This document shows, in pieces, positions 1-61,922 of a DNA stretch of 64,000 nt. The position numbers and the translations under genes are program-made. Source of the DNA: Schmidtea polychroa (lineage: Eukaryota); NCBI GenBank assembly GCA_044892525.1, contig CM097885.1, positions 109,492,001-109,556,000 of the forward strand. Reading direction: 5' to 3'. The notes below the pieces were generated by a model that saw nothing but the letters and a program-made list of their open reading frames with translations, ran no database searches and was not told the DNA's origin. How positions within the stretch are numbered: position 1 is the first letter of the stretch; each line of letters starts with the position of its first letter.

Positions 1-3000
1 GACTATTTTCAATTTCATCATGTCGAGATCTTCTAATTCGTTCCGCAATATCAGGAATGCTAGATTGAATTTGTACTGCTTCACATAAAATACCCATCAG
101 AGGCTCATTAACAGTTGCGGTTAGTTTTACGAGATCTTTTCCCTCCGAAACTTCTTTCAATAACATTTCTTCTAATTCAATCAGTTTCGATTCACTAATT
201 TCATTTTTCAAAGCATCTTTAGCGACTTTTATTCCATCAAGTAAATTCTCAACGTCTTTCCTGTTCAATAGTTTCTCTTTATCACCTTCTTCGTCATCAA
301 ATAAACATTTAATTGCCTCCAATATTTTGTTACTATCCTCATCGCTATTATCTAATCGCTTTTCACTCTTTATGCCTAATGCTTTTAATTGTTCACAAAT
401 AGATTTGTCAATTTTCACTTTAGATCCACTTTCTAAAGACCTGTTTAAATCGTTTATAATTTCTTCCACAAATCTTCTTTCTTTTTCTCCAGTCTTTGAT
501 TTCGGAATCAATGATTTCATAATTTCCAAACTTTCAACTAGTTCTTTGCCTTTCAAGTTGTTCAATTCACCTTTCTCCAGAGCATCGCATAATAATTTCT
601 GACCACTTTCAAGTCCTACTTTTCGTTCCATAGTTACTTCATCAATAATTTCGTCAACAATGTCTGCATTTCTAATTACTGTCGAATCTGGTACAATGGA
701 TTCTGAGATATCTTTGCACAATTTCCTTAATCTTTCAGCCTCTTCTTTATTCAATTCCAATTCCTTCGATTTGCAATCAATCACTTCTTGTAGTTTAGGA
801 AGAACTGATTCAAATAAAGTTTTATTTGCTTTCCATTCGTTGAATCTTTCTGAGTCTGGCGTTTCATTGATTTTACTTTCAACTTTATCCATAGCCTTTG
901 ACAATTTCGATAAATCTTGTCCTTTCAATTTTATTTGATCATTCTTTGAATTTTCCACTAATTCTTTCAAGATTGTTTCAATTGGTCGTCGACTATTTTC
1001 AATTTCATCATGTCGAGATCTTCTAATTCGTTCCGCAATATCAGGAATGCTAGATTGAATTTGTACTGCTTCACATAAAATACCCATCAGAGGCTCATTA
1101 ACAGTTGCGGTTAGTTTTACGAGATCTTTTCCCTCCGAAACTTCTTTCAATAACATTTCTTCTAATTCAATCAGTTTCGATTCACTAATTTCATTTTTCA
1201 AAGCATCTTTAGCGACTTTTATTCCATCAAGTAAATTCTCAACGTCTTTCCTGTTCAATAGTTTCTCTTTATCACCTTCTTCGTCATCAAATAAACATTT
1301 AATTGCCTCCAATATTTTGTTACTATCCTCATCGCTATTATCTAATCGCTTTTCACTCTTTATGCCTAATGCTTTTAATTGTTCACAAATAGATTTGTCA
1401 ATTTTCACTTTAGATCCACTTTCTAAAGACCTGTTTAAATCGTTTATAATTTCTTCCACAAATCTTCTTTCTTTTTCTCCAGTCTTTGATTTCGGAATCA
1501 ATGATTTCATAATTTCCAAACTTTCAACTAGTTCTTTGCCTTTCAAGTTGTTCAATTCACCTTTCTCCAGAGCATCGCATAATAATTTCTGACCACTTTC
1601 AAGTCCTACTTTTCGTTCCATAGTTACTTCATCAATAATTTCGTCAACAATGTCTGCATTTCTAATTACTGTCGAATCTGGTACAATGGATTCTGAGATA
1701 TCTTTGCACAATTTCCTTAATCTTTCAGCCTCTTCTTTATTCAATTCCAATTCCTTCGATTTGCAATCAATCACTTCTTGTAGTTTAGGAAGAACTGATT
1801 CAAATAAAGTTTTATTTGCTTTCCATTCGTTGGATCTTTCTGAGTCTGGCGTTTCATTGATTTTACTTTCAACTTTATCCATAGCCTTTGACAATTTCGA
1901 TAAATCTTGTCCTTTCAATTTTATTTGATCATTCTTTGAATTTTCCACTAATTCTTTCAAGATTGTTTCAATTGGTCGTCGACTATTTTCAATTTCATCA
2001 TGTCGAGATCTTCTAATTCGTTCCGCAATATCAGGAATGCTAGATTGAATTTGTACTGCTTCACATAAAATACCCATCAGAGGCTCATTAACAGTTGCGG
2101 TTAGTTTTACGAGATCTTTTCCCTCCGAAACTTCTTTCAATAACATTTCTTCTAATTCAATCAGTTTCGATTCACTAATTTCATTTTTCAAAGCATCTTT
2201 AGCGACTTTTATTCCATCAAGTAAATTCTCAACGTCTTTCCTGTTCAATAGTTTCTCTTTATCACCTTCTTCGTCATCAAATAAACATTTAATTGCCTCC
2301 AATATTTTGTTACTATCCTCATCGCTATTATCTAATCGCTTTTCACTCTTTATGCCTAATGCTTTTAATTGTTCACAAATAGATTTGTCAATTTTCACTT
2401 TAGATCCACTTTCTAAAGACCTGTTTAAATCGTTTATAATTTCTTCCACAAATCTTCTTTCTTTTTCTCCAGTCTTTGATTTCGGAATCAATGATTTCAT
2501 AATTTCCAAACTTTCAACTAGTTCTTTGCCTTTCAAGTTGTTCAATTCACCTTTCTCCAGAGCATCGCATAATAATTTCTGACCACTTTCAAGTCCTACT
2601 TTTCGTTCCATAGTTACTTCATCAATAATTTCGTCAACAATGTCTGCATTTCTAATTACTGTCGAATCTGGTACAATGGATTCTGAGATATCTTTGCACA
2701 ATTTCCTTAATCTTTCAGCCTCTTCTTTATTCAATTCCAATTCCTTCGATTTGCAATCAATCACTTCTTGTAGTTTAGGAAGAACTGATTCCAATAAAGT
2801 TTTATTTGCTTTCCATTCGTTGGATCTTTCTGAGTCTGGCGTTTCATTGATTTTACTTTCAACTTTATCCATAGCCTTTGACAATTTCGATAAATCTTGT
2901 CCTTTCAATTTTATTTGATCATTCTTTGAATTTTCCACTAATTCTTTCAAGATTGTTTCAATTGGTCGTCGACTATTTTCAATTTCATCATGTCGAGATC

Positions 3001-6000
3001 TTCTAATTCGTTCCGCAATATCAGGAATGCTAGATTGAATTTGTACTGCTTCACATAAAATACCCATCAGAGGCTCATTAACAGTTGCGGTTAGTTTTAC
3101 GAGATCTTTTCCCTCCGAAACTTCTTTCAATAACATTTCTTCTAATTCAATCAGTTTCGATTCACTAATTTCATTTTTCAAAGCATCTTTAGCGACTTTT
3201 ATTCCATCAAGTAAATTCTCAACGTCTTTCCTGTTCAATAGTTTCTCTTTATCACCTTCTTCGTCATCAAATAAACATTTAATTGCCTCCAATATTTTGT
3301 TACTATCCTCATCGCTATTATCTAATCGCTTTTCACTCTTTATGCCTAATGCTTTTAATTGTTCACAAATAGATTTGTCAATTTTCACTTTAGATCCACT
3401 TTCTAAAGACCTGTTTAAATCGTTTATAATTTCTTCCACAAATCTTCTTTCTTTTTCTCCAGTCTTTGATTTCGGAATCAATGATTTCATAATTTCCAAA
3501 CTTTCAACTAGTTCTTTGCCTTTCAAGTTGTTCAATTCACCTTTCTCCAGAGCATCGCATAATAATTTCTGACCACTTTCAAGTCCTACTTTTCGTTCCA
3601 TAGTTACTTCATCAATAATTTCGTCAACAATGTCTGCATTTCTAATTACTGTCGAATCTGGTACAATGGATTCTGAGATATCTTTGCACAATTTCCTTAA
3701 TCTTTCAGCCTCTTCTTTATTCAATTCCAATTCCTTCGATTTGCAATCAATCACTTCTTGTAGTTTAGGAAGAACTGATTCAAATAAAGTTTTATTTGCT
3801 TTCCATTCGTTGAATCTTTCTGAGTCTGGCGTTTCATTGATTTTACTTTCAACTTTATCCATAGCCTTTGACAATTTCGATAAATCTTGTCCTTTCAATT
3901 TTATTTGATCATTCTTTGAATTTTCCACTAATTCTTTCAAGATTGTTTCAATTGGTCGTCGACTATTTTCAATTTCATCATGTCGAGATCTTCTAATTCG
4001 TTCCGCAATATCAGGAATGCTAGATTGAATTTGTACTGCTTCACATAAAATACCCATCAGAGGTTCATTAACAGTTGCGGTTAGTTTTACGAGATCTTTT
4101 CCCTCCGAAACTTCTTTCAATAACATTTCTTCTAATTCAATCAGTTTCGATTCACTAATTTCATTTTTCAAAGCATCTTTAGCGACTTTTATTCCATCAA
4201 GTAAATTCTCAACGTCTTTCCTGTTCAATAGTTTCTCTTTATCACCTTCTTCGTCATCAAATAAACATTTAATTGCCTCCAATATTTTGTTACTATCCTC
4301 ATCGCTATTATCTAATCGCTTTTCACTCTTTATGCCTAATGCTTTTAATTGTTCACAAATAGATTTGTCAATTTTCACTTTAGATCCACTTTCTAAAGAC
4401 CTGTTTAAATCGTTTATAATTTCTTCCACAAATCTTCTTTCTTTTTCTCCAGTCTTTGATTTCGGAATCAATGATTTCATAATTTCCAAACTTTCAACTA
4501 GTTCTTTGCCTTTCAAGTTGTTCAATTCACCTTTCTCCAGAGCATCGCATAATAATTTCTGACCACTTTCAAGTCCTACTTTTCGTTCCATAGTTACTTC
4601 ATCAATAATTTCGTCAACAATGTCTGCATTTCTAATTACTGTCGAATCTGGTACAATGGATTCTGAGATATCTTTGCACAATTTCCTTAATCTTTCAGCC
4701 TCTTCTTTATTCAATTCCAATTCCTTCGATTTGCAATCAATCACTTCTTGTAGTTTAGGAAGAACTGATTCAAATAAAGTTTTATTTGCTTTCCATTCGT
4801 TGAATCTTTCTGAGTCTGGCGTTTCATTGATTTTACTTTCAACTTTATCCATAGCCTTTGACAATTTCGATAAATCTTGTCCTTTCAATTTTATTTGATC
4901 ATTCTTTGAATTTTCCACTAATTCTTTCAAGATTGTTTCAATTGGTCGTCGACTATTTTCAATTTCATCATGTCGAGATCTTCTAATTCGTTCCGCAATA
5001 TCAGGAATGCTAGATTGAATTTGTACTGCTTCACATAAAATACCCATCAGAGGTTCATTAACAGTTGCGGTTAGTTTTACGAGATCTTTTCCCTCCGAAA
5101 CTTCTTTCAATAACATTTCTTCTAATTCAATCAGTTTCGATTCACTAATTTCATTTTTCAAAGCATCTTTAGCGACTTTTATTCCATCAAGTAAATTCTC
5201 AACGTCTTTCCTGTTCAATAGTTTCTCTTTATCACCTTCTTCGTCATCAAATAAACATTTAATTGCCTCCAATATTTTGTTACTATCCTCATCGCTATTA
5301 TCTAATCGCTTTTCACTCTTTATGCCTAATGCTTTTAATTGTTCACAAATAGATTTGTCAATTTTCACTTTAGATCCACTTTCTAAAGACCTGTTTAAAT
5401 CGTTTATAATTTCTTCCACAAATCTTCTTTCTTTTTCTCCAGTCTTTGATTTCGGAATCAATGATTTCATAATTTCCAAACTTTCAACTAGTTCTTTGCC
5501 TTTCAAGTTGTTCAATTCACCTTTCTCCAGAGTATCGCATAATAATTTCTGACCACTTTCAAGTCCTACTTTTCGTTCCATAGTTACTTCATCAATAATT
5601 TCGTCAACAATGTCTGCATTTCTAATTACTGTCGAATCTGGTACAATGGATTCTGAGATATCTTTGCACAATTTCCTTAATCTTTCAGCCTCTTCTTTAT
5701 TCAATTCCAATTCCTTCGATTTGCAATCAACCACTTCTTGTAGTTTAGGAAGAACTGATTCCAATAAAGTTTTATTTGCTTTCCATTCGTTGGATCTTTC
5801 TGAGTCTGGCGTTTCATTGATTTTACTTTCAACTTTATCCATAGCCTTTGACAATTTCGATAAATCTTGTCCTTTCAATTTTATTTGATCATTCTTTGAA
5901 TTTTCCACTAATTCTTTCAAGATTGTTTCAATTGGTCGTCGACTATTTTCAATTTCATCATGTCGAGATCTTCTAATTCGTTCCGCAATATCAGGAATGC

Positions 6001-33000: not shown

Positions 33001-33336
33001 TACTATCATCATCGCTATTATCTAATCGCTTTTCACTCTTTATGCCTAATGCTTTTAATTGTTCACAAATAGATTTGTCAATTTTCACTTTAGATCCACT
33101 TTCTAAAGACCTGTTTAAATCGTTTATAATTTCTTCCACAAATCTTCTTTCTTTTTCTCCAGTCTTTGATTTCGGAATCAATGATTTCATAATTTCCAAA
33201 CTTTCAACTAGTTCTTTGCCTTTCAAGTTGTTCAATTCACCTTTCTCCAGAGCATCGCATAATAATTTCTGACCACTTTCAAGTCCTACTTTTCGTTCCA
33301 TAGTTACTTCATCAATAATTTCGTCAACAATATCTG
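1..33336 (-). repeat. Coding tandem array, 990-bp unit, ~33.7 copies visible (continues past the left edge)
   Basis: Exact 990-bp periodicity: the plus-strand shadow ORFs recur at 327, 1317, 2307 ... 32007. Only substitutions were seen between units. Homology ends near 33336 (tcgtcaacaa-tatctg vs tcgtcaacaa-tgtctg). Confidence 0.99.
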
Positions 33337-35460
33337 TAAAATCGGGTTTCTTTGTTTCATAGTCCATAAAATTCACTTGAGATTCTCTTGTTTTATTTTC
33401 TTCTTTTTCTTTTTCTTCATTTATTATTTCATTTTTTTTTGTGTTTTCAAAATTTTGTTTTTCTTCCTGTTCATATTTATTTAATTTGTTATCGTCGTCT
33501 TTTATTTTGCTTTCTTTATATACTAATACTTCTGTTTTCCTGCTATCATTATCTGGTTTTTCTTGAGTTCCTTTTAGGTGATACTCCATTATATCTGTCA
33601 TTTCCAAGCATATTATGTTTTCTGTATCCGAACCTACACTTGTTTCGTCTGCCTCTTCAATTGTGTCAAGAACTTCATTTATTATTTGAGTTTCCTTTTC
33701 ATTACATTTTATGTTTTTATACTCTCCTTTATTTTCAATTTTTTCTATTACTTCTATTAGTTGAAAAATGGTATTTTTATTTTTATGAATTCCTATGCTC
33801 TTGCTAGCAATGGATTTCAGTGATTTTACTAATTTTTCGTCGCAATCAATCCCATTAGTTTGATTTACAATGTTTCTTACAGCTTTAGCATTTTCGAAAT
33901 TAAAACTTTCTAAATTTTCATTTTCTTTAATATGTTTTATTATTGCAGTATTAATTTTTAGGATTCTCAACGCCTCTAATAATTTATTAGCTTCTTCTTG
34001 TGACAATTTTAATAAAATATCATTAGTGGTTTGTTGCTTCGTTTTCATAGCCTTATTTAATATTTCATACGCTTCATTTATAATTTCAGTTTCTTCTTTT
34101 TGCAAGAATCCCGCATTATTTTCTTGTACTTCTTTTCCGTAAATATTTATAAGATTTTCTAATTCTTTTACTAAAGGCCGGTCTAAAATAACTTCATTTT
34201 CAGTATTTTCAAAAAGTACATCATTTAATTTTTTCGAAACGTTTTCAATTGTCTTTATTTTTTGTTTTGCATTGAATATTTCTGAACCGCAAACAATTAA
34301 TCTAGTTTCTTCAGAATACTCTAAAGGATCTTCATCGTCGTCACTTTCATTGGGTGTATCATTATAATATTCCATTATTTTATAAACAATATTTTCTTGA
34401 TTTTCTTCATCCACAGAGTTAACTAAATCAAAAATACTCTCTACCCTTTTCCCGCGATATCCGTCTTTTTTTATTCGATCCAAAAATAACTTTGTATATT
34501 CAGTTTGATTTGTTATTTGCTTCTTTTGTTGTAATATGTTAGTCAAGGAGCTTTTAACTCGTAGATAACTTGCATTTGAAATTTCACACGAATTTCTAGT
34601 TAAGTAACCGTAAACTAACGATGATTTTTTTAATTTTTTTGAAGGATTTTGCTTAACACTTTTTTCTGGGTCATATCTGTGTTCTATTGTGAATGTGAAT
34701 TCTTCATTTTCCGGTTTATTGTAATTTGTTATTCGAACATTCAGCTGTTCACTCATGTCAAAATCGCTTTCGAATTCTGAAGATTCGATTGATTCCGTTC
34801 GAGAATCAAATGTATCTGAAATGTCTGATTCACAATAAATGTCGAACTCTCGATTAATATTAGCCCTCGAATGACTTATTAATGAATTTAGTTTTATAAA
34901 TGATTCTTTCTTTATCACTTCTGGCATTTCGTTATTCACCGGTTTCATTAATTTACCCAATCTCGATATTTGAGATTTAGCAGTAGATTGTTTTGTTAAT
35001 AAATAATTAATTAAATTTGTATTATTGTCCTGAGATTCGCTGACATTTGTATCAAAGAACTCTTGATTTTCTGGATTATCTTTATCTTTATTTTCTGAGA
35101 AATTTGTAAGCAATTGATCTGATTTTTTAAATTTTTTATAATCATCACTGATAAAATTAGATAAATTTTTCTTAATTGACTTCTTTGGTCTCTCTTTGTT
35201 GATATTAATGCATTCATCTTTTGGTAAAGATATTTCTGGATTAGATTCAAAATAAAAAGTGGGATAAAAATTCTCTTGGACGTGTTCACAAGACGATGAC
35301 AAAGTATTGCTATCGCTGGTTACTATCTCAATTTGTTGGCACTGGTCCGTGTCGATAACAATATGATCCGTAGTAATGATTTTCTTTTTCGTAGGAAATT
35401 CATTACTTGATTTATCTGATTTCTTTTTCTGCCTAATCCGTTTTTTTCTGTGCTTTTTAC
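2..35460 (-). CDS. Giant single coding exon (>35.4 kb, >=11,820 codons, 3'-incomplete): ~700-aa unique acidic/basic region followed by >=33.6 tandem 330-aa E/K/L-rich helical repeats; probably the central exon of the STARD9-like kinesin
   Basis: I translated the unique region (35460-33337) and one full repeat unit codon by codon in the minus frame (plus-strand triplets starting at position = 2 mod 3) and found no stop. The variant sites I checked in other units also create no stop. The frame closes just upstream at TAA 35473-35471, after a polypyrimidine/AG acceptor (TTTTTTTAG|GT AAA AAG CAC, AG = 35462-35461, phase 1). It begins (G)KKHRKKRIRQKKKSDKSSNEFP...; the repeat starts DIVDEIIDEVTMERKVGLESGQKLLCDALEKGELNNLKGKELVESLEIMK... 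It is absent from the ORF track because no stop lies inside the window. Confidence 0.93.
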
Positions 35461-38663: not shown

Positions 38664-38746
38664 CTTGGTTATCGATACGGTGTTTGATGCTGTCAGATGA
38701 ACCAGAATGTCCATTGTAGAAATAAGTTGTTGGTAGCCTTGAAACT
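38664..38746 (-). CDS. 83-nt internal exon (K)VSRLPTTYFYNGHSGSSDSIKHRIDNQ(G) linking upstream exons to the giant exon
   Basis: Acceptor TGTTTTGTTTTAACCTTTATCTAACAATAG| with a CTAAC branch-like motif, donor CAAG|GTAATA. Open reading, phase 2 to 1, matching the phase-2 donor at 47776 and the phase-1 acceptor at 35460. Confidence 0.7.
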
Positions 38747-39640: not shown

Positions 39641-39748
39641 AGTAACATTTTCATTGGTAATCATTTAAATTAACACGCTATTTTCAAATATATATTTTAA
39701 TATAAAATCTGAATATTTAAACAATATAACAATTTAAATATCATCACT
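39641..39748 (-). repeat. 3' LTR (108 bp)
   Basis: AGTGATGATA...ATGTTACT, immediately preceded by the polypurine tract. Confidence 0.92.
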
Positions 39749-39760
39749 CTCCCCTTCTTT
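39749..39760 (-). other. Polypurine tract AAAGAAGGGGAG
   Basis: Purine run directly abutting the 3' LTR and overlapping the integrase stop codon. Confidence 0.85.
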
Positions 39761-41057
39761 AAGAACTGTGATACTCTTTCAGCCATTCAATTCTTCTGCA
39801 TCTTTTCCCACCTTGATATTCTAGTTCAACTTGGTGTTCCGTTGAAAAACCAAGAATCTTTACAGGACCCTCGAACATATTACCATGTTTTGATCTCTTA
39901 TGAGGATCTATTTTTATTAGAACTCTCTGACCCACCTCAAAATGCCGATGACTTTTCTTATCTGCATCTCTTGATCTCATTTTATCTGCCGCTACCATAA
40001 CATTATTCTGTGCAGTCAATAATACTTGTTCTCGATTAAGATCTATGAATGAATTCTTTCCATGTATATTAACCTTTCTTCCAAATAGTATTTCCATTGG
40101 CGAAAATCCCGTAGAATTCTGTGTTGTTGAGTTTAGGGAATATTCAATTTTTGGCATAATGTCGTCCCAACACCCTTCAGTTTGACCATTACTCAAAAAT
40201 GTCATGATCATATCAAGAACTGTTCGTATTACCCGTTCTGCTAAACCATTAGACTTATGATCATATGGCGAAGTAAATATCCATTCGATGTTAAAATTAT
40301 CAGCTAACCCTTTGATTTGATTTCCCTCGAAAACCTTAACTCTATCCGAAACAATGTAAGCTTGTTTACCAAATTTGTATATCCAATTGTGTAAAAGTGC
40401 ACGATATAGTCTTTTCATCTTGGTTTTGAGTAGGCGTTAAACTAACCATCTTGCTGAACTGGTTTCCTTCATATGAGCAATATCGATTACGATTTGTTCC
40501 ATCGAGTTCATTATTACCCTAGGAATTAAATATTCAGCTGTTTTACTTGTCAAAACTTTCCTTATCATGCATACATCACGTTTTTTTATAATATCAAGTA
40601 TATCGGTTACCATGTGTATCCAAAAGAAATAATCGTTCATATAATTTGTTGTTTTCTTAACTCCTAAATGACAGAGTTCTTTGTGCATATGCTGTACGAC
40701 TTGTGACACTATCTTCTGCGGAATTATTATCTCCTTCTTATTATTATTTACTATTAATAACAGATTGTCTTTTACCAATATGTGATCCAATCTTTTGAAA
40801 TAAAGTGAGTCCCGAATCAAGTGAAGTATCTCGGGGCTCGGGTTTAGTATATATTTCTTTATTGTAGACAGCAAATTATCTGTTTCCTGATTCTCAATAT
40901 ATACCTGCATATTTAAATTACTTGAAGTAATCACGTTTAAAATTCTTATTCGGCTCTTCTCAAGTTTTCCTTCTTCGTGTTTGGTTTGACATTGTAGGTG
41001 AGTTCCATGGGCTTTGCATTTCTTGATAATGCCCATTTTCAATAATTTCATAATCAT
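39759..41057 (-). pseudogene. Ty3/gypsy integrase split into two ORFs (40437-41057 zinc-binding domain; 39759-40418 catalytic core and C-terminus)
   Basis: HxxxxHLGVKKT...YFFW...CxxC-like zinc motif (first Cys lost), IDIAHM (first catalytic D), IVSDR and TSPYDHKSNGLAERVIRT core motifs, LNSTTQNSTGFSPMEILFG. The segment between the first D and WIYKFG is deleted. Confidence 0.92.
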
Positions 41058-41149
41058 ATTGGTTCCGGTAATCCTTTCGCTTTGTTGAAAACTTGTCTTG
41101 CAATATGTTTCAAAGAAACCGTAGGCCTATTGTGTCTTCATTAACCAAT

Positions 41150-41410
41150 AAACTTTCTTAGCTTCATCTTCTTTCAGTACCATGTGATCTATTGTCATAA
41201 TTGTCGTAACTTCTTTTTTTACTGATGGTCTAATCTATGATTGAACATTCTGCCTTACTGCCTTGTTACCGATGCATACGACAATTTTTTCTTATCATCT
41301 GCCAATACAAATACCTCTCTGGCGTCTTCTGTATGTAAAATATTTTCAAAATTTACATTCAATTTCTCTATTTCTGTAAGAGATACTTCTAGGTTCATTG
41401 CAATTGCATC
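41150..41410 (-). pseudogene. Degenerate RT-connection/RNase H remnant
   Basis: ILHTEDAREVFVLADD vs ILxxPDxxKPFxLxTDAS; SYAS...SKAECSIID vs IAYAS...AExNYS; TIMTIDHMVL vs FTIxTDHxxL. Interrupted by stops and frameshifts. Confidence 0.55.
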
Positions 41411-42013
41411 CTAAACTTTTTCTGAATACATACGTTGTTTAAAATCAAGATATAAAATAACAATTTTATTGTCATCAACAGAGCCACTGGGATCAGTTTT
41501 GAATAATAACAGTTTGTCCATTTCAATATCATAAGATAATGCCATCATTGAACAACCTAACGGTCGCATCTCAGCCGATTGGGTGTAAAGCTTATTAATA
41601 TCCGCAATAGAACTACATATTATGTCACAAGCCATTTCATATCCATTTTTATATCTAAATCGAGCTGCTTCCATTTGTGCACGACATACTTGAGATCGAT
41701 AATCAGGGATCATACCAGTCATAACACCTCCAGGACTTTCAGTAATATTAAACAACCTTGAAGCTGAACTCTTCTCAATCATTTTATCTGGAACCTTTCT
41801 TTGTGTAGCTACTACATCACAATTATTGCCTCGAATACCAACGGAAAGCAATCCACCAAATAAATTTGATATTAGTTGGCCAAAAACACCATTAACGTTA
41901 TCAAGATCTCTTGGGGTCATGGAAAAGGAACCATCAGTTTCGTTGGTAGTATTTCCCATTTCCATTTCTTCATTAAAAGCAGCCATATTTGATCGGAAGC
42001 ACATAAACTCCAA
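41411..42013 (-). pseudogene. PSMA6: Chimeric ORF: degenerate RT segments flanking an in-frame, intronless proteasome subunit alpha type-6 (alpha1) fragment at ~41483-41857
   Basis: GGLLSVGIRGNNCDVVATQRKVPDKMIEK...LFNITE..GGVMTGMIPDYRSQVCRAQMEAARFRYKNGYE...IADINKLYTQSAEMRPLGCSM...FKTDPSG aligns with the PSMA6 core as I recall it (GGLTSVAVRG...TQKKVPDK...VYTQNAEMRPLGCCM...YKCDPAG). The flanks resemble RT motifs: MTPRDLDNVNGVFGQLISNLFG vs MPFGLxNAPxxFQxLM, and EKV*DAI vs PEKVxAI. Confidence 0.85.
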
Positions 42014-42090
42014 AAAACCGAAATCGATACCATTAACAACTCTCTAAATCCATTCACATTCAAAAATCTAATTAACTTCTAAATCTCTTG

Positions 42091-42237
42091 CTCGCGTCTG
42101 TGTGCGCACACAAGCCAAAAACAAAGAAAAGACAAGCGCACACAGACGCGAGATAAACTAATAATCCAACACAAAAATGACACTGCTTGCGTCTGTGTGC
42201 GCATACAAACCCATAATACAACGCGCACAGAGACGCG
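42091..42237. repeat. Two tandem GC-rich hairpins inside the LTR element
   Basis: 42091-42107 CTCGCGTCTGTGTGCGC pairs perfectly with 42136-42152. 42188-42202 pairs with 42223-42237 with a couple of mismatches. Confidence 0.85.
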
Positions 42238-42247
42238 AATTGACCTT

Positions 42248-42649
42248 CTAATTTACCATACGTCTTGTTACAATATCCTTGACAATCATATCTTCTGTTT
42301 GATTTGCGGAAAGAACTTCACGAACTAATTTTCTCACTCTGATTACAAAATTTTCAAACCTTTCGTCCGATCTCTGCTTTATCAGACTCATGTCTTCGAT
42401 ATTTTGCAAAAAACTTTTGAATTTTACATATTTTAAAATAAACCAACTCCGGTTCCTTAAAGGCCATCCATAACTCTTTTGCGTCTTTTGTAATAATAAA
42501 TCGAATACTGCTTTTAAATTGAGCGAATTTATCGTCACAAATTCTTCAATAGATACAAGCCAGTCCTTTGCATTTTCTTCTTTTCCTCCAAAACACTTCT
42601 TTATCACTGGGTAAATTGAATCTTGAATATTCCTTGTCAAAGATTCCAC
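42248..42649 (-). pseudogene. Retrotransposon Gag remnant
   Basis: FGGKEENAKDWL (FxG...WL) and KQRSDERFENFVIRVRKL (major-homology-region-like) motifs just downstream of the PBS. Confidence 0.75.
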
Positions 42650-42693
42650 AATTTTCTACCTTTGCTGTGATCTCGTCAGAGATGCGATTTCGG

Positions 42694-42704
42694 CGTGGTC
42701 GCCA
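42694..42704 (-). other. Primer-binding site TGGCGACCACG (tRNA-Arg(UCG)-type 3' end)
   Basis: Starts at the last base of the 5' LTR with TGG. Complementary to a tRNA ending CGUGGUCG-CCA, as I recall for metazoan tRNA-Arg(UCG). Confidence 0.75.
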
Positions 42705-42811
42705 GTAACATTTTCATTATTAATCATTAAGACTAACACGCTATTTTCAAATATATATTTTAATATAAAATCCGAATATTTAAACAATATATTAATTTAA
42801 ACATCGTCACT
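42704..42811 (-). repeat. 5' LTR (108 bp)
   Basis: AGTGACGATG...ATGTTACT; direct repeat of 39641-39748 with 10 substitutions by my manual alignment. Confidence 0.92.
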
Positions 42812-42868
42812 CTCCTTACTCGTCGTCGGATCACAGAACATCGAGTCAATGGATACGTCAAGAACAAA

Positions 42869-43231
42869 TCAATAGTTTAAATAATTTAAAATTAACAAAG
42901 GTAATCTAAATATTGATGTACTCATATTTGCAGCAATATTGATTGAAATCGGTAACGTCGAATTGTTTTTCAAATATTCTATTAATCCTTTGATTGTTTG
43001 AATTTCGCTTAATAATAATTCAATCTTTTTTAACAAATGATCATGCTTCTTATCAATAATTTTCATATTCTTTTTATTTTCAACAAAAGAGTTATTGAAA
43101 ACTTCAATATGATCAATCAATTTAAATTTTATATTTTGTATATATTCAAATGATAGTTCATAGCAGTTTTCTAATTCTCCAATCTTTGAGATATTTTTAT
43201 CCTGGATGCTTTGCCCATTTTGGTTTGTCAA
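42869..43231 (-). CDS. Small hypothetical coiled-coil-like protein (120 aa)
   Basis: ATG-started 120-codon ORF in AT-rich DNA with a heptad-like stretch (HLLKKIELLLSEIQTIKGLIEYLK). Divergent from the Bcl-2-like gene. No recognised family. Confidence 0.45.
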   Translation of the reverse strand: MTNQNGQSIQDKNISKIGELENCYELSFEYIQNIKFKLIDHIEVFNNSFVENKKNMKIIDKKHDHLLKKIELLLSEIQTIKGLIEYLKNNSTLPISINIAANMSTSIFRLPLLILNYLNY

Positions 43232-43474
43232 GAATATATAAAATATCCATCAACTTGGCAGCATTCAAACAAACACATATTGATTTATTAAAAGACTCCA
43301 GTTATTGTTGTATTGTGTATCACACACTCGTTATAATAATTAGCAATATGAATATAGTTTTCATGGTGTATCAAATCAAAACTCGTATATATTTTACATT
43401 TATAGTCTATCAACCAATCAGAATCATGTGGTATTAGTATAAATAAAAATATTATATTTTAAATTATTGTAGAA

Positions 43475-44028: not shown

Positions 44029-44390
44029 TTAATTAAAACATTCACAATCGTCATCTCCACATTTCATTACATTTTCAACGACATGATCAATACAATCATT
44101 CGTAATATTTTTCGTGTCTTTAGGTTCATCTATAGGTTCATCTATAGGTTCATAGATTTCCTCATCAATTTCTTGAGTATCGGTTTCTTGAGTTTCTTCC
44201 TGATCATCAAATCCTGAATCTTCACTCTCAACTACCCAGCCGATATTTAATGCATTTGTAACAGATAATATGTCCTCAATTTTTACACCAGCTATTTCTG
44301 CTAATTTTTCCAACAAAAAGTTGATTACAAATTCTAAATAATAAATAATTCGTTAATTAATTAATCATGTTAACCTTTTTCTGCAGTCAT
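44029..44390 (-). CDS. Small acidic protein with a Cys-rich tail; exon 1 44390-44375, 41-nt intron, exon 2 44333-44029
   Basis: ATG ACT GCA GAA AAA G|GTTAAC...TTTAG|AA TTT GTA joins in frame to the supplied 44029-44316 ORF: MTAEKEFVINFLLEKLAEIAG...EPIDEPIDEP...CGDDDCECFN*. Confidence 0.6.
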
Positions 44391-45954: not shown

Positions 45955-46205
45955 NNNNNNNNNNNNNNNNNNNNNNNNNNNNNNNNNNNNNNNNNNNNNN
46001 NNNNNNNNNNNNNNNNNNNNNNNNNNNNNNNNNNNNNNNNNNNNNNNNNNNNNNNNNNNNNNNNNNNNNNNNNNNNNNNNNNNNNNNNNNNNNNNNNNNN
46101 NNNNNNNNNNNNNNNNNNNNNNNNNNNNNNNNNNNNNNNNNNNNNNNNNNNNNNNNNNNNNNNNNNNNNNNNNNNNNNNNNNNNNNNNNNNNNNNNNNNN
46201 NNNNN
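45955..46205. other. Assembly gap (251 N)
   Basis: Run of N. Confidence 1.
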
Positions 46206-47115: not shown

Positions 47116-47775
47116 TATATGGTTATAATCAGAAATTTATTTATAAAATTTTGACTTAAATTCTGTATATAATAGTGATGACACCAAATATAATGTTTAA
47201 ATTATAAATAGCCCGTGATAAATAGCCCGTCAGTCGCGAACTGCAGCTCAATATATTATTTAGATGATTTTATTCGGTTATACCCGTATAAAATTTAATA
47301 ATTTAAGCCAACTATGGTTGGAATAACCGATACAGAGGTTATTAAAGAAATATTACGTTATCCTTTTCCGATGTTTGTTATTGGTGAAATTGTTCTTTAT
47401 TATCGTGGTATTCCTACCTTATCTCACACCTTCAAAAATGTGCAACTACTTGGATGTGAGGCTAAAAAAGTGATTACATTAATGAATTGTTTGACTTACT
47501 ATTTTGAATTGTTAAACGATGGTTTTATGTTTATTTTAGGTAATTGTTTTCTCAGTTGAGGTTTTGTTTTTTTCCCGTGAAAAATGTTTTCAACAATATT
47601 CTAAAGATGGAATAAATTGATAATAAAAACATTTGAACAAATTGCTAGTCTTTCTAAGCTTTATTACTTTCTTTAGTAAACTTCTGAATAAAATTCATAA
47701 TAATTGTGTCCAATTTTTTAAAATTTGAAATGGTTCAATGGTAATTTTAAATTTGTGAAAATCTACAAAGTTTAC

Positions 47776-50078
47776 TTTTTATCTCCGGAATTAGTTGCAT
47801 CGTCATCTAAGCTATCAGTCTCCACATGGCTAAGGGAACTTTCTGAAAGTGCAGTGAGAGAGAATCTGATGGACGATCTACCTCTTGGTATTTGATAAAT
47901 TGGCGAATTTTCAGACGAAATTCCGACAATTAAGGAGGAACCAGAAGCCGATAAATTTGGCAAACTTTCTCCAATTTTTTGTTTCATTATTGAACGAGGA
48001 CGGATATTCCTTAAACACTCGTGTGAAATTCTATGTATAGATCGGTTATCATTCAAATTATGAAAGGAAGATTTCATTTCGATATCTTTTCCTAATAATT
48101 CAGTTGACACTCCAATAGAGGTGTACCTCTTCTCCGATTTTTGAGTTACTTTTAATTTATCATTTGAAAATGTTTGAACTTCTGATTTTGATGTCTCATC
48201 TAGTAGACTTAGAGAGCTTATATAATATTTCTTTTCAAAATTAAATGCAGGTTGGTCAACAGATAACGCTTCGACGGACTTAATTATATTCTCCGATATC
48301 AATTCATTAAGAGAATCTTAAATTGTAAAACTTTAAGAGGCGCAAATTTTATAATTAAATACCTTCATATTGCATGTCTTCAAAAGAGCTCCGAGAAGTC
48401 TCTCTATACATAAATTTGGTAAAATTATTATTAAATTAAAATTTTATTAACGACATAAAGTGCCAAACTAACTTTAAATAACAACATGTTTTAAAGGGAG
48501 AAAATTAATAAAAAATTTGGCCCAAAGTGATATAACTGTTTTTAGCTATGACGCCCTTTCTCCCTTTACGAAGATTAAATAAATTTTTAAAGTAATTCTT
48601 AAAGTATTTTCGGGAAATGTTTGTAGAAATGGAGAAATGGAGTGCTAAACCAATATTGTTTATATTTGAAAGCATAAGAAAGAACCATATACGGTTTTGG
48701 AGGTTAACAAACACTTATCCAGTGAGTCTGATCAAAGTAGATGAAGGAAGGTATAGGTAAAGGTTGGCACGAAGCGCTAGTGCTAAGTATGTGGATAGGA
48801 ATTTACAGAATGTCAATACATCTACTTTTAATATGAATGGGACAAGTTATCAATTAACGTAGGTCACTTTTAAGTGATACTTTCCCGAAAAACGATGGAT
48901 TAAAAGTAATTATGCAGCAACCAAAAAATGATAAGCTGATTAACATCTTTTGTAAAATTTATAAACATTCATTTCTTTTTTAACTAGATTGACAAGACTT
49001 ACGACATTATATTAGAAGGAAATATATATAATTCATAATAATTTTAAGCAGGCGAAAAATAATAGTCAGAGAAATCCTGAAAGAGTGAAATGTGCTCTTT
49101 CTATTAACATAAAATTTCAAAATTTACATAAATATTGAGGAGTATGAACTACTTATCCCTTTAAGTGCGGAGTTAAATTTCATAAAAAGTCAGGAAATGT
49201 GTCAATTATCCATCAAAAATAAGTTAAAGATGTAATTGTGATTTGAAAATTTGAAACACGTGTAGAACAATCAAGGAAACATAATACATTCAGTAAATAT
49301 TAAAAAAAAAATTTTCACCCAAGGGTTGTTAAAAGTAGAAACAAAGGTCTATTCGATAGTATTCGGATTTATCCGCATTTCGCTTGTTAGAGGGTTAAAA
49401 CTATTTTTCTGTTTAGAAAAGATTTTTGTAAAAAAATGCAGTTTGAATGATAGTAAAAAGAATATTTACAAAGATCGTGCAAAACCTCAATATAATTTAA
49501 GAAAAATAAAGGGAGAATTAAAGAAAATTAGAAAAATTAACTAGGAATGGAATCAATATAGAAGCAAAACTATAACGAAGAAACGTTTGAAAATATATGT
49601 ACGGATAGATTTGGAAATCACAATTAATTAAAGAAAAGCTGACTTTAGCCTTATCGGTGAAAGTAAACAAATGATTATCAAGACAGACTGAAGGGTGGGC
49701 ATTTATTTTCCCAGTGACATCAGAAAAATATCAAAACTACATTCTAAACAAGTTGGTCATTATCCTTGATAATCTGCCATAAAAACCTTATTTTATAGCA
49801 CTTCAAAACACAAAAATTAAAAGCCGAAATATTTTTTTGGAATAATTAAAAATATCTAACAATATTTTCTGTTAAAAATAAAACAAAATAATAATAGTCG
49901 AAAAATATAATAAATAAAATTGTAAAAAAATCATCGATATTAATGAATAAAAAGAATTTAGTGAAATACAGATAAAAAATAATCGAAAAATACTTTATAA
50001 AACGAAAATTACAAATAACCAACTAAAAAATTCATACCTTTGAAGCAAAGATTCCTTGGATTCGTTAATTTTCTGCAT
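47776..50078 (-). CDS. Three spliced exons (50078-50038, 48403-48363, 48316-47776) encoding a Ser-rich low-complexity segment, inferred tail of the kinesin
   Basis: All are GT-AG bounded and phase-consistent (0 to 2, 2 to 1, 1 to 2), with a 46-nt intron at 48362-48317: MQKINESKESLLQR|ETSRSSFEDMQYED|SLNELISENIIKSVE...ATNSGDK(K). The third exon is the supplied 47772-48302 ORF. Confidence 0.72.
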
Positions 50079-50380
50079 CTAAAATAAAGTATTGAATAAT
50101 GTGAATAAATTGCACTCAGTGCTAGCTTGTGTGCAAACAGCACAGTAACAGAGCAGCACTGTGCAAAAAGTTGATAATTACAATAATGCAAACATGATTA
50201 ATATAAAATTTGAATATTTGATTAACAGTCTGAATTTGTATAACCGCGTAAAATTTGTTTTAATGAAGCTTATACAGATTATCTTTTTCTTTATCTATTT
50301 AGATATGGTTTCGATAAAATAACATATTTATAGTTTGCCTATTTTTATGTAGTGATTTAGTTATAATATAAAGGATTCCC

Positions 50381-51929: not shown

Positions 51930-52020
51930 ACAAAAATAGTGGTAGCATCTTTATCATTTTGAGAAAGGATAGAAAGCTGCTCAGTCATTTCGCGATCTCA
52001 ACAAACCCTTCGAGTCGAAA
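51930..52020 (+). mobile_element. Mariner transposase N-terminal HTH fragment
   Basis: HLYHFEKG*KAAQSFRDLNKPF resembles the Mos1-type HTH start. Confidence 0.5.
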
Positions 52021-54019: not shown

Positions 54020-54119
54020 CTGATTTCCTTTGTTAATTGATCCTTCATCTAAAATTTATTTAACAAAATGCTAATATAAAATTTATTTTCGTACCAGCAT
54101 CATACGACCCATCTTCTTC
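54020..54119 (-). CDS. Two micro-exons (54119-54095, 54048-54020) continuing the kinesin: EEDGSYDAD|EGSINKGNQ
   Basis: Strong acceptors and donors, 46-nt intron, phase 0 to 1 to 0, matching the phase-0 donor at 56283. Confidence 0.6.
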
Positions 54120-56282: not shown

Positions 56283-59200
56283 TGCTGAACTGTATCTTTT
56301 GTATGATATACTATTTTTTCTTTGTTTTGTCCAGTTTCGCGACATCTCATCGACCTATTAACAAAATTCCATCAATTAATTTGTATTAATAAAATTTCAG
56401 AAATATAAATTGACCACCTTTTGTGATTTTATGAGCAAATCTTCTGGTATTTGCTGAAAAATTTATATTAAAATTGACCGAATTTTTTCCAAAATTACTT
56501 TGCTATTTAACTGATTTTGTAATATTTTTATTTGCTCCCTCAATTCTCTTATCAGTTTTACATTTGCATCCTGAAATTAATTTCAATAATTAAAAATTCT
56601 TTAAAAATTTTAATACTTCATTGACAATTGGAGTGTTCTTAATTTCTTTGGTTCTTTTAGCGAATCGCAGAGTTGCTATAGTTTCGTTGTAGAATTTTCC
56701 GTTCGGCGTAATGGCTACACAACTTTTAATTATTTGACGCAGATAAAATATCTCATTTATAATTTATACCAAAGAATGTCTACTTTCAAAATTAAGTAGT
56801 AGGTGAATAGAAGAAAATAATTTTAATTATTACAGTAACATTTAACGTGTTTAAGTTATTCTTGGACACTTAAGAAAAAATGTGAAATATTATTTTAATT
56901 ATTTTATTTTACACAAAAATAAAATTTTTATTCAAGTATATTAATAAAAGCCTATTTTAATAATAATTAATATTCGTAATTAGTATTCGTAAATATTATT
57001 TGTATATTTTTCATAAAGTACGAAAAATAAATAATTAAAAATAATAATTAAAATTAAATGGTAAAAATTAAAAATATATAATATTAATAAATATTATTAT
57101 TGACTTCACTTTTCTTAAGATAAAGACAAATGATTTCTTGAATAAAAAGTAATTTCAACATTAAATTTTATTTTTGGACAAAATTATAGCATGATCCGTT
57201 TATTTTTGGAACCTATGAAGATTCTTTGATATTTTTGTATTACTGTATGGCAAGATTCATTAATTGTTTTATTGACATTTTAATGGGTTATAACAATTAT
57301 ATAACAATACACATGCTTCCTCCTTTTTTAGATCTTCTATTGAAAAACTATAATTTGGAAATAAATTTTATTAATATCAAAGACAAAAGTGTGAGAGTGA
57401 ACTTTGACTGATGAAAAAAGCCAAACACTGGAACGATCAATTTCAGAAAAAATCTGCACAAGAACTCCAATATGAAAATAATTTTTGAATTTGTGGTTGC
57501 ATTATACGCGTTATTCAAATAAATTTTTATTGGTTTTTATAATTTAACATTATTTTAATTTTCATATAATAAATTAATATAAAGAACTAGACTTCAATAA
57601 TTGACACTTCAGGCATTTTCCGAAAATGGCAATTAAAATGTTCATAGAGTAAAACGAGTTTTTGCCTAAATTACTAATTTATGTTTTCAACAATTCACCG
57701 AGTTTTCTTTTCTATATTAAATTTATGGATCATATAAAAGAATGGAAAAAATCAAAAAATCAAATAATGAAACATGACTAGGTCATTTTTTAATTGAAAA
57801 GTACACAGCAAAAAAGGGAAAACAAAAACAAAACAAAATAAAATTTAAACGGGCATAATTTGACAGCCTGATCGAAATAAGGAAAAGAGGTCACAATGGA
57901 AGCCGGGAGATGGCATCTTCTGCCAGGCATATTAGGAGAATTGGAGAGGACCAAACGAAATGTGCGGGAAAAAATATTGAAATTGAAGTCTATATCAATA
58001 AGTGCTATTAGATTGTGGACTATAAAAAACACGCCTGGAGTTAAAACTGAGTTGAATACTGAGTTGAAAACTGAAGAAAGAGAAACAAAAACAAGACAGA
58101 ATTTGTAAAGAGAAGAAAATAAAAATTCTAAAGAAAGGAAGAAAAACCACTAGGACAAATCTACAGATTATTGAAACCAGAAACAATAGTCAAGTGGTTG
58201 TGAATTTCAAGATGTATTGTTGTTTTCCTCCTGAATGAGTTGTCTTTGTGTCACTCTAAATCGGTAATCAATTGTTTTAATCAATAAAGTTTATATTGTC
58301 GGGAACTCGTTATTGTTATTAAAGAAGGCACGCTTTGGAGTGAGATCAATAATTGATAATATTTAAATTTACCCACAACACCAACAAAATCAACAAAATA
58401 TATTTTATTATTTTCTAACACTAGAATTTGTGTTATGGAATGCAGTAATTGATCATATGTAGCTATTTTACAGGCCACCATTGACCTTGTTTATTGAAAA
58501 TGAGAACATTTAAAATATATATATTCCTGTGAAAATAATATTTACTTCCAATCATTGTTGTTAAGGAATTTCCACCGAGAGAATCTTTCAATATCCAAGT
58601 CAATTTCGAGTTTCGATAAGGAATGTAAGAAGTCTTGTCTGCTTTAAGACTTAATTTGGCTAAATGAAGAAATAAAAACCATTTTCTTAATTTCGATATA
58701 TTTTACCTAAAGCATCAATTACTGTACCAAGATTCATTAATGACTTGTTTATGCTTGACCCTTCTCTTTGTCTTTCATAAGAATATATAGGTGAATCCAA
58801 ACTTGAACGCTCACTACATTTTAAACAAATTTATTTAATATAACAAAAATAATGAAAATGATTTAAATCAATGTTAATTACTTGTTGGGCCAAAATTAAA
58901 AAAAAATAAAATAAAATTATACTATAATGATTTTGTTGAAATATGTCGGTAACACAACACAAAAACAGCATTAAGTTGAGTAAAACTCAAAACACGATGA
59001 AACACCAAATAAACAATTAAATATGGAGAAAATATACACAAAAAATCATAATGGATTAAAAAATAAATTTTTTTACGGATGTCTAACAATAAAATAAGAT
59101 AAAAATTACAAGCTTTGTGATACCCATTGCAAATCCCAATAGTAGACTAGTTTCGAGCTTTTGGCTCTCATCAGTACTATGCAGTGTATGCTGTGTATGA

Positions 59201-61922
59201 CGGTGTCTTCAGAGGCGAATATGATTTTTCATACGCCATGTTTACAAGTTTGCAGATATTTGTTTCTGTGATTTAGCGAATTTGCAAGTGATGTGATTTC
59301 CAGTGTAGCAGGTAAAGTATGCAATAGAGTTGAATCAGCAATATTGTATACTTACCAGGTGCGAAGAGAAATCTTCGCGTCTCCTGCATAGTACTGATGA
59401 GAGCCAAAAGCTCGAAACTAATCTACTATTGGGATTTGCACTGGGTATCACAAAGCTTGTAATGTTTATCTTAAAAAAATCATAAATATAAAAATAATAT
59501 TCAAATAATTGATGTTCAAGAAGTTCAGCAATAAAATAATACAAACATAACAAAAAAGATATTACAAAATTAAAACAAATTCAAGGAAAATAAGAAATAA
59601 ATTATAAAAATAAAATTTTAGCAAAAATAATTAAAAAGTAATATAAGAAATGGAAAAATACAATTGTAATTAGTTAAATTATCAAAAAAAGAATGAAAAA
59701 TCTCACAATCCAATAAGGAATTGCGAATAAAGTAAATTAAATAAATTAGAAATTTTAGGAAGTTAATAAAAATAGATTAGAAAAGACATTAAAATATAAT
59801 GCAAAAGACTTAAAGGGTAAAAAACGAATAATAACTGCGAAATCAATCATGGAATAGCAAATAACATAAATTAATTACAGTGTATATTTGAATAAATAAA
59901 TTCATTCTACAAGACTACTATAGTAATTAATTTAGAAACAGTTTCAACAACTAAATGGAATAATTGGTGAATAAATAGCTAAAAAATAGAACCAGTAGAC
60001 AACGCAACATTTGAATCGCTTAAAAGAAGGAAATTTGGTAAGAGCATAAATTTGTCGAAATTACTTTTCTAGACATTTTTTCAGAGTTGTAATTTTGTAA
60101 TTTCAAAGGGATAATATAATAGAATAATCAATATTTATTGAATTGCAATTTGCTTTCTTGAAATTGTCTTATTTTTAGTTTATTAGTATGCGAGCTTTAT
60201 ATACTTTATATGACAGCAGTTTTCAATGGTTTATGTTGTGGTTCGTCCTTATGTAAGATGGTTAGTTATAATTTTCTATAATATAATTTAGCCAGCGATT
60301 TTACGAATAGAGTTTACAATTTATAAATATGGTTATTGTATACCGTCAACAAAGTAATTTATTGTCTTGAAAAAGGCAAACATAATTTATAAAACTTTTA
60401 AACTTGATAATAATTTGCAGTTAAACATAAATAAAAATAGATAAGAACTTTAATGAAATTTTTAGGTCTGTTTAACTGATTAATTTGAAATATTTGATAT
60501 ATGGCGATATTCAGAGTATTAGTCTGAAAATGGGAACGATATATGTCCATTTGCAAGTCTATTAAAATCAGGACAAATAAAATTTTTTTTGTGTAATATT
60601 ATTTAATTGATTTACATAGATCTACAATTCTTATGTCTGGTGTTGAGTAAGGTGACCAGATTTTTAGATGGGCAAAGCGGGACAGCTTTGAAGGAGGGGG
60701 ATATCAACAAAAATTTTCATATAGAATAAAAATAATATGTAATATTTTTTGATTTTTAGCATAAGTACAATTTATAAATATAGAAAATTGTATAATATTT
60801 TATTCCTTGACATATTTTTTATGCATTTTGATGCGAGATAGATCGTGAAAAATCGGGACGTCTGGTCACCTTAGTGTTGAGTGTCTAACTACAACGGGGA
60901 CCGTGAAGCAAATCGGACACATATTTTTCATTGATAGTTGGTGGATTCATGAGAACTTTAACTAACTATAGTTCACCAACTATATTTATTAACATTCATC
61001 CATTCGACATATACTAACTTTGTTTATTCAACGCGTGTCTAGTGGTAGGGAAGCGTTGTATTCTGGGTTAAGCTGGTAAGGTATAATTTTGGTTATCTGT
61101 AATCACCAGTTTGAAGATTTGGAATTTTCTCAANNNNNNNNNNNNNNNNNNNNNNNNNNNNNNNNNNNNNNNNNNNNNNNNNNNNNNNNNNNNNNNNNNN
61201 NNNNNNNNNNNNNNNNNNNNNNNNNNNNNNNNNNNNNNNNNNNNNNNNNNNNNNNNNNNNNNNNNNNNNNNNAAACATTCTTTAAACGAAATATTTTGAC
61301 AGTTTTCCTGTCATCATCAGGTAGGATATAATAACTATTTAAATTAAGGATTTTTAAAATATTAATACAATAAATATTTTTTTTTAAATCCTTAATTTAT
61401 ATAGTTATTATATCCTACCTGATATTGACAATAAAACTGTCGAAATATATCGTGAAAAGAATGTTTGATTGGCGATTTCTTATAATTAAATCATTGACTA
61501 TAATGATTACTAAAAATATCACAAAACTAAAATACAAGTTTCGGTCAATGAAATACAGCTAAATCCTTATTTCGTTTTCTTATAAATTTTTATAGTAACC
61601 ATAGACCGAGACTTGGTGAAGTTATTTGAAAGGAAAGATGTTCTGATGTTTGACTAATATAGGAAATTAAAACTACCTTGTAGAAAAAAGTATATATCTG
61701 ATTTTAAGAATAATAATATTTAAAATTTCAAACTAACCTGCCTGCCAAATCAACAAGATGAAATTTGCTTTTAAAGTCTTGAGGAGCTTCTGAATCCAAC
61801 ACAACCTAAAGAACACGGTAAGTTTGTTTTATAATAAAAAAAGTAATACATGTTGATAATGAATTGTCAAAATAGCATGACTCCTACTACTCTGGTCATG
61901 AATGTGGGTTGCTCCAATTGCT
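56283..61922 (-). CDS. STARD9: Kinesin-3 motor C-terminal half and neck, STARD9/KIF16A-like; exons 61922-61850, 61805-61738, 58813-58707, 58659-58546, 56714-56617, 56570-56499, 56453-56418, 56354-56283 (5' exons not found in the window)
   Basis: Spliced translation, all junctions GT-AG and in phase: RAIGATHIHDQSSRSHAILTIHYQH|VVLDSEAPQDFKSKFHLVDLAGS|ERSS...EGSSINKSLMNLGTVIDALA|KL...[75 protein letters not shown]...|QIPEDLLIKSQK|VDEMSRNWTKQ. Kinesin identity is certain. ATH-x-H before SSRSH, TIHY and EDANxKLIREL match STARD9 as I recall it, so the symbol is tentative. Confidence 0.9.
57785..58010 (-). mobile_element. 3' end fragment of a non-LTR retrotransposon (CR1/L2/Jockey-like)
   Basis: NIFSRTFRL...HLPASIVTS resembles the FFPRTxRLWNxLPxSIV C-terminal motif, followed by a T-rich UTR and an A-rich end. 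Confidence 0.4.
59139..59180 (-). ncRNA. Minimal type-I hammerhead ribozyme (intact core)
   Basis: AUAGUA-CUGAUGA-GAGC(CAAAA)GCUC-GAAAC-UA-GUC^UACUAU: 6-bp stem I, 4-bp stem II, minimal palindromic stem III, GUC cleavage triplet at 59147-59145. Confidence 0.85.
59388..59429 (+). ncRNA. Second hammerhead copy with a G16.2-to-A change (GAAACUAAUC)
   Basis: Same architecture on the plus strand. The substitution breaks the C-G pair of stem III. Confidence 0.75.
60648..60873. mobile_element. 226-bp hAT (Tip100-type) MITE
   Basis: Perfect 13-bp TIR TAAGGTGACCAGA / TCTGGTCACCTTA and perfect 8-bp TSD GTGTTGAG (60640-60647, 60874-60881). Confidence 0.93.
61134..61272. other. Assembly gap (139 N)
   Basis: Run of N. 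Confidence 1.
61273..61466. repeat. 194-bp imperfect palindrome (fold-back element)
   Basis: The left arm AAACATTCTTT...TCAGGTAGGATATAATAACTAT..AAATTAAGGATTT is mirrored by the right arm ending ...AAAGAATGTTT; ~90-bp arms with a short AT loop. Confidence 0.9.
61535..61615. mobile_element. Small MITE-like element with 16-bp inverted repeats
   Basis: CAAGTTTCGGTCAATG ... CATAGACCGAGACTTG (2 mismatches); no clean TSD. Confidence 0.4.

Follow-up and report, generated by a model that had tools for sequence, protein, structure and literature searches.

A kinesin-3-type motor and a giant exon of tandem 330-aa units on one strand of a Schmidtea polychroa contig: one gene or two?

Introduction

Do the exons of a kinesin motor and an exon of more than 35 kb, built mostly of near-identical 990-bp units, belong to one gene when both lie on the same strand of a single stretch of DNA? 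The stretch that raises this question, hereafter called the window, comprises 64,000 nucleotides (nt) of Schmidtea polychroa (GenBank assembly GCA_044892525.1, contig CM097885.1, positions 109,492,001 to 109,556,000 of the forward strand), and coordinates below are those of the window. The original prediction had linked the two into a STARD9-like motor protein of more than 12,000 amino acids (aa), in which a central exon would have been expanded by a repeated module. According to the analysis reported here, a single transcript carrying both the kinesin motor and the repeat tail is the likeliest single reading of the sequence, at a probability that nonetheless stays below even odds.

Results and discussion

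The giant exon and its coding status

On the minus strand, 11,823 codons run without a stop from 35470 to 2, where the frame leaves the window at its left end. The frame begins with 712 codons of unique sequence and continues as a repeat array thereafter, so that the giant exon has two parts:

33335-35460, minus strand: unique head of the giant exon, 708 aa past the acceptor, without Pfam or PDB relatives.
2-33334, minus strand: tandem array of 33 full units and 1 partial unit, 990 bp (330 aa) each, passing the left edge of the window.

The head measures 712 codons when counted from the opening of the frame and 708 aa when counted from the acceptor. A T-rich AG acceptor (35460) lies 10 nt downstream of the point at which the frame opens, and the first ATG of the frame is codon 175 (34948), leaving 174 codons without any ATG; therefore, the giant exon is an internal exon and not a first coding exon, and exons upstream of it are needed.

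Given the nucleotide frequencies of the sense strand, stops should make up 9% of codons, and the probability of openness by chance is about 1.8e-14 for one unit and about 7e-31 for the 712-codon head. Codon usage was scored with the homology-validated motor exons described below as the only training set. In the proposed frame, the scores were 0.24 bits per codon for the head, 0.51 for the unit and 0.19 for exon C, a Ser-rich exon located upstream, while all three sequences scored negatively in the remaining five of five frames. The frame of the giant exon is coding. Open reading frames (ORFs) of 203-289 codons also occur on the plus strand within the array; they were considered as a second gene and rejected, being explained by how strongly purines prevail on the sense strand. 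At its very start, the giant exon carries a dense basic cluster, KKHRKKRIRQKKK (35458-35420, minus strand), which we take to resemble a nuclear localisation signal.

Tandem array of 990-bp units

The array starts at 33334, with codon 713, and its terminal partial unit is 221 aa long. Tandem Repeats Finder did not detect it, the 990-bp period exceeding the limit of 500 of this program, and the copies were analysed instead by lag identity and unit extraction. Self-comparison of the DNA at a lag of 990 gave 99-100% identity from ~32.5 kb leftwards; neighbouring copies are 99-100% identical, with no indel in 33 copies and 30 variable sites. A unit of this length is divisible by 3, and a single frame is free of stops across 33.7 copies. 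The exon of more than 35 kb with 330-aa tandem repeats that had been read from this DNA is consequently borne out, with 11,823 open codons and 33 full units plus a partial one.

Variants are shared blockwise among the copies: copies 10-12 recur as 16-18, copies 11, 17 and 19 are identical, as are copies 25-28, and copies 3 and 5 differ only slightly. Such haplotype blocks are what unequal exchange would leave behind in a real array, and not what a collapsed or inflated assembly would be expected to show. The array would have grown and been kept uniform by unequal crossing-over between units, as the copy haplotypes suggest. Synonymous and non-synonymous changes among the copies stand at 11:20, a ratio that is not significant at this low divergence, and a hand tally of changes by codon position gave 11, 5 and 15 (rough chi-square p ~0.09); both measures lean to constraint, neither of them significantly. 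No unit-like sequence was found elsewhere in the window. Judged from its sequence, the array is a real and very young coding macrosatellite of orphan nature.

Protein encoded by the head and the unit

The unit encodes 37.4 kDa with an isoelectric point of 4.9 and is rich in E, K, L, S, I and D. An AlphaFold2 model of two units is all-alpha, with ~12 helices of 15-30 residues per unit and short loops, at a predicted local distance difference test (pLDDT) score of 47.5. An internal sub-repeat of the unit was considered and rejected, since self-BLASTP, self-hhalign and hydrophobicity autocorrelation show only a helical signal of 3-4 residues; no clear heptad signal was seen in the unit by self-hhalign and hydrophobicity autocorrelation.

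Pfam and PDB sequence searches with the unit, the head and exon C returned nothing meaningful. A phmmer search of the head and one unit against 1.84 billion representative proteins returned a single match, P0001, a 524-aa metagenomic ORF on a 2-kb contig (JGI sample 3300013315, Ga0173609_11053246), which aligns ungapped with unit residues 27-158 at 30% identity over 132 aa. P0001 holds a single copy of the unit-like stretch, in contrast to the array of near-identical copies in the window. Neither an exact 28-mer of the unit nor a profile made from the unit and P0001 found a match in metagenome contigs. The 330-aa module thus appears, as far as these searches go, to be an orphan. As a side observation, the ends of P0001 (L001 427-2001) resemble by eye a BEL/Pao protease and integrase, a likeness for which Pfam gave no confirmation.

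Kinesin motor exons

At the opposite end of the window, the following features were recorded:

61850-61922, minus strand: motor exon m1, AIGATHIHDQSSRSHAILTIHYQH, with switch I and SSRSH; Pfam Kinesin positions 188-211; enters in phase 2.
61738-61805, minus strand: motor exon m2, ending in KFHLVDLAG plus 2 bases, the start of switch II; joins m3 in frame.
58707-58813, minus strand: motor exon m3, (S)ERSS...INKSLMNLGTVIDAL, with switch II and helix alpha-4; Pfam Kinesin positions 232-271, E 1.1e-5.
58546-58659, minus strand: motor exon m4, with a short loop 12 and helix alpha-5; Pfam Kinesin positions 268-301, E 7.7e-11.
56617-56714, minus strand: motor exon m5, (T)ITPNGKFYNETIATLRFAKRTKEIKNTPIVNE, the end of the motor and the neck linker; Pfam Kinesin positions 302-327.
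56499-56570, minus strand: exon m6, DANVKLIRELREQIKILQNQLNSK, a kinesin-3-type neck coil with matches to PDB 5djn and Pfam Kinesin_assoc.
56283-56354, minus strand: candidate exon m7, 24 codons, phase 0 to 0, donor gtaagt, without homology support.
61134-61272, no strand: assembly gap of 139 N within the 2,924-nt m2-m3 intron.

These seven exons were joined in frame via canonical AG/GT sites. Exons m1-m5 (61922-56617) cover positions 188-327 of the PF00225 profile without a break, and the expected motor motifs are present, with SSRSH in m1, DLAG/SE across m2 and m3, and INKSL..LG.VI.AL; the joins DLAG/SER, ALA/KL and MIG/TITP are exact and in frame. The profile is contiguous and DLAG-S-ER joins cleanly across m2 and m3, so that the gap between these exons hides no motor exon and the frame does not depend on it. 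Validated introns measure 44 nt (m1-m2, 61849-61806), 47 nt (m3-m4, 58706-58660) and 46 nt (m5-m6, 56616-56571). These short introns use TAG or CAG acceptors and GTA or GTT donors, and the non-coding DNA has ~25% GC. Taken with the invertebrate-like best matches, both features speak for a non-vertebrate animal of a lineage with small introns.

The closest PDB matches to m4, the exon of alpha4, loop 12 and alpha5, are KIF13B, KIF14 and KIF1A. The neck coil of KIF13 matches the neck coil encoded by m6, DANVKLIRELREQI, with E 0.027 and 22 of 24 residues aligned to 5djn, and the additional match of m6 to Pfam Kinesin_assoc positions 5-33 is weak (E 0.017, under the curated cut-off). The minus strand of the window was searched without success for a P-loop (GxxGxGKT/S) and for the N-terminal portion of the motor. 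Since m1 is entered in phase 2, earlier motor exons are expected beyond position 64000. An FHA domain was looked for and not found in exon C, in the head, in the unit and in 10 minus-strand open pieces between 56.0 and 50.5 kb, a search that very small exons could escape; a motif scan of the window for FHA, the P-loop and other tail domains was negative, and no PH, PX or CAP-Gly tail domain was detected.

From the PF00225 coverage, the neck coil and the matches to KIF13B, KIF14 and KIF1A, a motor and neck of kinesin-3 type are present, the motor lying only partly inside the window, in line with the kinesin-3 motor exons that had been placed on this strand.

Exons between the motor and the giant exon

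Between m7 and the giant exon, the pieces from which a connection would have to be made, and the two other features that interrupt this interval, are as follows:

54119-54095 and 54048-54020, minus strand: two candidate micro-exons of 25 and 29 nt separated by a 46-nt intron; conjectural, without homology support.
50038-50078, minus strand: candidate exon A, 41 nt, with AG directly before ATG and an in-frame stop directly upstream.
48363-48403, minus strand: candidate exon B, 41 nt, with an in-frame ATG and a 46-nt intron to exon C.
47776-48316, minus strand: exon C, 181 open codons, Ser-rich and of low complexity, with an AG acceptor and a GTAA donor; no Pfam match.
45955-46205, no strand: assembly gap of 251 N between exons C and D.
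39641-42815, minus strand (sense): degenerate retroelement of long terminal repeat (LTR) type, with Pfam matches to a Gag p24 C-terminal domain, a proteasome alpha-6 fragment, integrase H2C2 and integrase core.
38664-38746, minus strand: candidate exon D, 83 nt, with an ATG in an alternative frame.

Exon C is a real exon, given its 181 open codons, its positive codon score and the lack of ATG in its first 79 codons, the first M being at codon 80. Exon A could be either an internal exon or a start exon, possibly a trans-spliced one. Over the 3.2 kb that precede the giant exon, exon D stands out as the sole GC-rich island; by phase or openness it is not unique. The in-frame join earlier proposed for the last five pieces (A, B, C, D and the giant exon) was reproduced, with no stop and with every named splice site a canonical AG/GT. 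In the single-gene reading, the four micro-exons and exon D would be exons of the same gene as the motor. No open frame crosses the gap at 45955-46205.

Does the motor join the tail?

The full chain from m1 to the giant exon is in frame, contains no stop, uses canonical sites and encodes 12,274 aa in the window; motor, intermediate pieces and giant exon all lie on the minus strand. The 46-nt introns proposed beside the micro-exons match the 44-47-nt class of the validated motor introns. Exon m7, if real, ends in the consensus donor gtaagt, so that the kinesin transcript would continue downstream, and no alternative kinesin tail is visible in the next 8 kb. That a kinesin-3-type motor and the orphan tail form one polypeptide of at least 12,274 aa (~1.4 MDa) within the window is accordingly put forward as a tentative reading, somewhat more open to doubt than to belief.

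Several observations weigh against it. Between exon C and the giant exon, 368 other AG..GT segments are open and compatible in phase; the in-frame chain is therefore of little evidential weight, and its use as proof of a link between motor and tail was rejected once these alternatives had been counted. The micro-exons of 25, 29, 41 and 41 nt are without homology support, exon C can splice straight into the big frame at 35447, and the sense-oriented LTR-type element sits within the proposed 9-kb C-D intron, sense LTR elements being less usual in introns than in intergenic DNA. Independent starts are possible as well, with in-frame ATGs in A and B and an ATG in another frame of D, a frame that reaches the big frame via the phase-0 acceptor 35452. 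A TAA stands directly behind the donor of exon C, and this exon could be a terminal one. With FHA searched for and not found, the motor departs from the textbook kinesin-3, and we know of no kinesin of such size. Consequently, of the motor protein of more than 12,000 aa in the original prediction, the in-frame chain of 12,274 aa stands, whereas the link itself is not carried by it, given the 368 alternatives and two-gene models that fit equally.

If motor and tail are linked, this would be one long minus-strand gene of which the 5' part lies only half within the window. The kinesin-3-type motor and neck coil would bind microtubules and walk along them, the neck coil presumably allowing dimerisation as is known for the kinesin-3 family. 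The motor and neck would be followed by a few small Ser-rich exons and then by one internal exon of at least 35.5 kb, encoding the 712-aa unique head and at least 33.7 near-identical 330-aa modules. A model of low confidence predicts ~12 short amphipathic helices in each of these modules. The visible tail would be acidic, with a mass of at least 1.34 MDa, and may serve as a very long modular tether or scaffold on the motor.

Such a link would yield a motor protein on the scale of titin, several times STARD9 by residue count and to our knowledge the largest motor protein described, with a tail whose copy number is probably variable and whose length could change by unequal crossing-over. It would also offer a natural test of the effect of tether length on cargo transport or cytoskeletal organisation.

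Among the two-gene explanations, the one that best withstands the evidence splits the chain after exon C; it is judged unlikely, if still to be taken seriously. A short kinesin, made of motor, neck and a Ser-rich tail of ~250 aa, would end at the TAA at 47772, and an orphan giant-exon gene would start between 47.7 and 35.5 kb, possibly at ATG 38714 in exon D, in phase 0 to 35452. The frame of C does meet TAA one codon past the proposed donor, although a GTAA donor yields TAA in one of three phases by construction. The interval from C to the giant exon contains a sense LTR-type element and an assembly gap, like much intergenic DNA, and in-frame chains across it are cheap to build. An ATG-initiated route from D into the big frame exists; however, it spans just 17 codons and lacks independent support, and the kinesin would be left with a ~250-aa tail devoid of any recognisable domain.

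A split before exon A or B was found more improbable. Here, the kinesin would end within 56.2-50.1 kb and a second gene, composed of A and/or B, C, possibly D and the giant exon, would start at the ATG of A (50078) or of B. An AG acceptor straight before an ATG is the arrangement to be expected at a trans-splice site in lineages with a spliced leader, and exon A has this arrangement with an in-frame stop directly upstream, while B has an in-frame ATG. The region 56.2-50.1 kb is without detectable coding exon or Pfam domain, and read-through of the m7 donor hits a stop after 25 codons. On the other hand, this donor is the consensus gtaagt, the phase 0 out of 54020 or 56283 fits the phase 0 into A, and the kinesin would consist of motor and neck only.

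That the array is not a functional coding exon, being either a satellite derived from a coding fragment and still open only because of its youth, or a copy number created by assembly, is very improbable: the copies have diverged too little for selection to be tested clearly (11:20; 11, 5 and 15) and no known homologues exist, but the frame runs seamlessly through the 712-codon unique head to a canonical acceptor, the unit is a multiple of 3 with no indel in 33 copies, its codon usage matches that of the motor exons in this frame only, the structured haplotype blocks oppose a collapsed or inflated assembly, and a 132-aa ungapped relative of 30% identity exists elsewhere.

Even without a link to the motor, the exon is an unusual one, with at least 35 kb of 990-bp coding units more than 99% identical. 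In it, tandem amplification has created new protein mass to an extreme degree, and both the assembly of genomes and the prediction of genes are put to a hard test.

Comparison with known proteins

The central region of STARD9 is mostly encoded by one very large exon, and the layout of the present locus would be analogous if motor and tail are linked. STARD9 (KIF16A) is a protein of ~517 kDa in which a kinesin-3-type N-terminal motor precedes a very extended central region devoid of recognisable domains, and it has been reported to be conserved in vertebrates only (PMC3383713), whereas introns of 44-47 nt and invertebrate-like best matches are found here. Loop 12 of STARD9 carries a conserved 26-aa insertion with a DSGXXS motif (PMC4310736); this insertion is absent from the present motor, whose loop 12 has 10 residues, 3 of them Lys. 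Set against STARD9, moreover, no FHA domain was found here in exon C, the head, the unit and the 10 open pieces searched. The tail of STARD9 is unique sequence and that of the present locus a near-identical tandem array, with no sequence similarity between the two (the search of 1.84 billion proteins gave P0001 only). A C-terminal START domain, if the locus encodes one, would lie beyond the left edge of the window, past which the array runs. The label STARD9-like is hence not supported, neither an FHA domain nor the loop 12 insertion having been found and the tail being dissimilar, and the proposed expansion of a STARD9 central exon is not upheld either, as the head and the unit match nothing but one metagenomic fragment. 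The likeness to STARD9 appears from these comparisons to be one of layout at most and not of descent.

Against the group of KIF1A, KIF13B, KIF14 and KIF16B, the differences are the FHA, PH, PX and CAP-Gly tail domains, not detected here in the searches above, and the short loop 12. Loop 12 of KIF1A is longer and more basic than the present one.

Giant repeat proteins encoded by single exons include profilaggrin, with units of ~324 aa, Ki-67, whose repeats lie in one large exon, and Drosophila dumpy. The present array resembles these in having one huge exon, many near-identical in-frame units of roughly one hundred to a few hundred residues, unequal exchange and a copy number that is probably variable. 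Unlike them, it is made of an unrelated, all-alpha and acidic unit and adjoins a motor gene, and it is longer than arrays of this type, with at least 33 units of 990 bp, cut by the edge of the window.

Neighbouring elements and assembly breaks

The retroelement at 39641-42815 is flanked by 112-nt direct repeats that are 91% identical. Its proteasome alpha-6 fragment shows at most 58% identity to flatworm, insect, mollusc and rotifer proteins, and its integrase has matches in environmental contigs only. By its order of domains, it looks like a non-autonomous LTR-type element with a host gene fragment captured between Gag p24 and integrase. The layout of P0001 echoes this order of gag, captured fragment and integrase. 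Just upstream of the element, two minus-strand open frames at 42872-43249 and 44032-44352 (126 and 107 codons; one is very acidic) have no meaningful Pfam match and may be further parts of the element or unrecognised exons.

At 63294-63955 on the minus strand, upstream of m1, open pieces resemble the C-terminus of a mariner/Tc1 transposase, e.g. ...VRSPDLSPSNFFLWDYLK, with no Pfam match. Within the m2-m3 intron, a 92-nt inverted repeat, 86% complementary and with a 10-nt spacer, occupies 61273-61466 and abuts the assembly gap; this palindrome may have caused the break in the assembly. The same intron contains, at 59095-59473, a pair of 90-nt inverted arms that are 97% complementary and 199 nt apart, a foldback like that of a miniature inverted-repeat transposable element.

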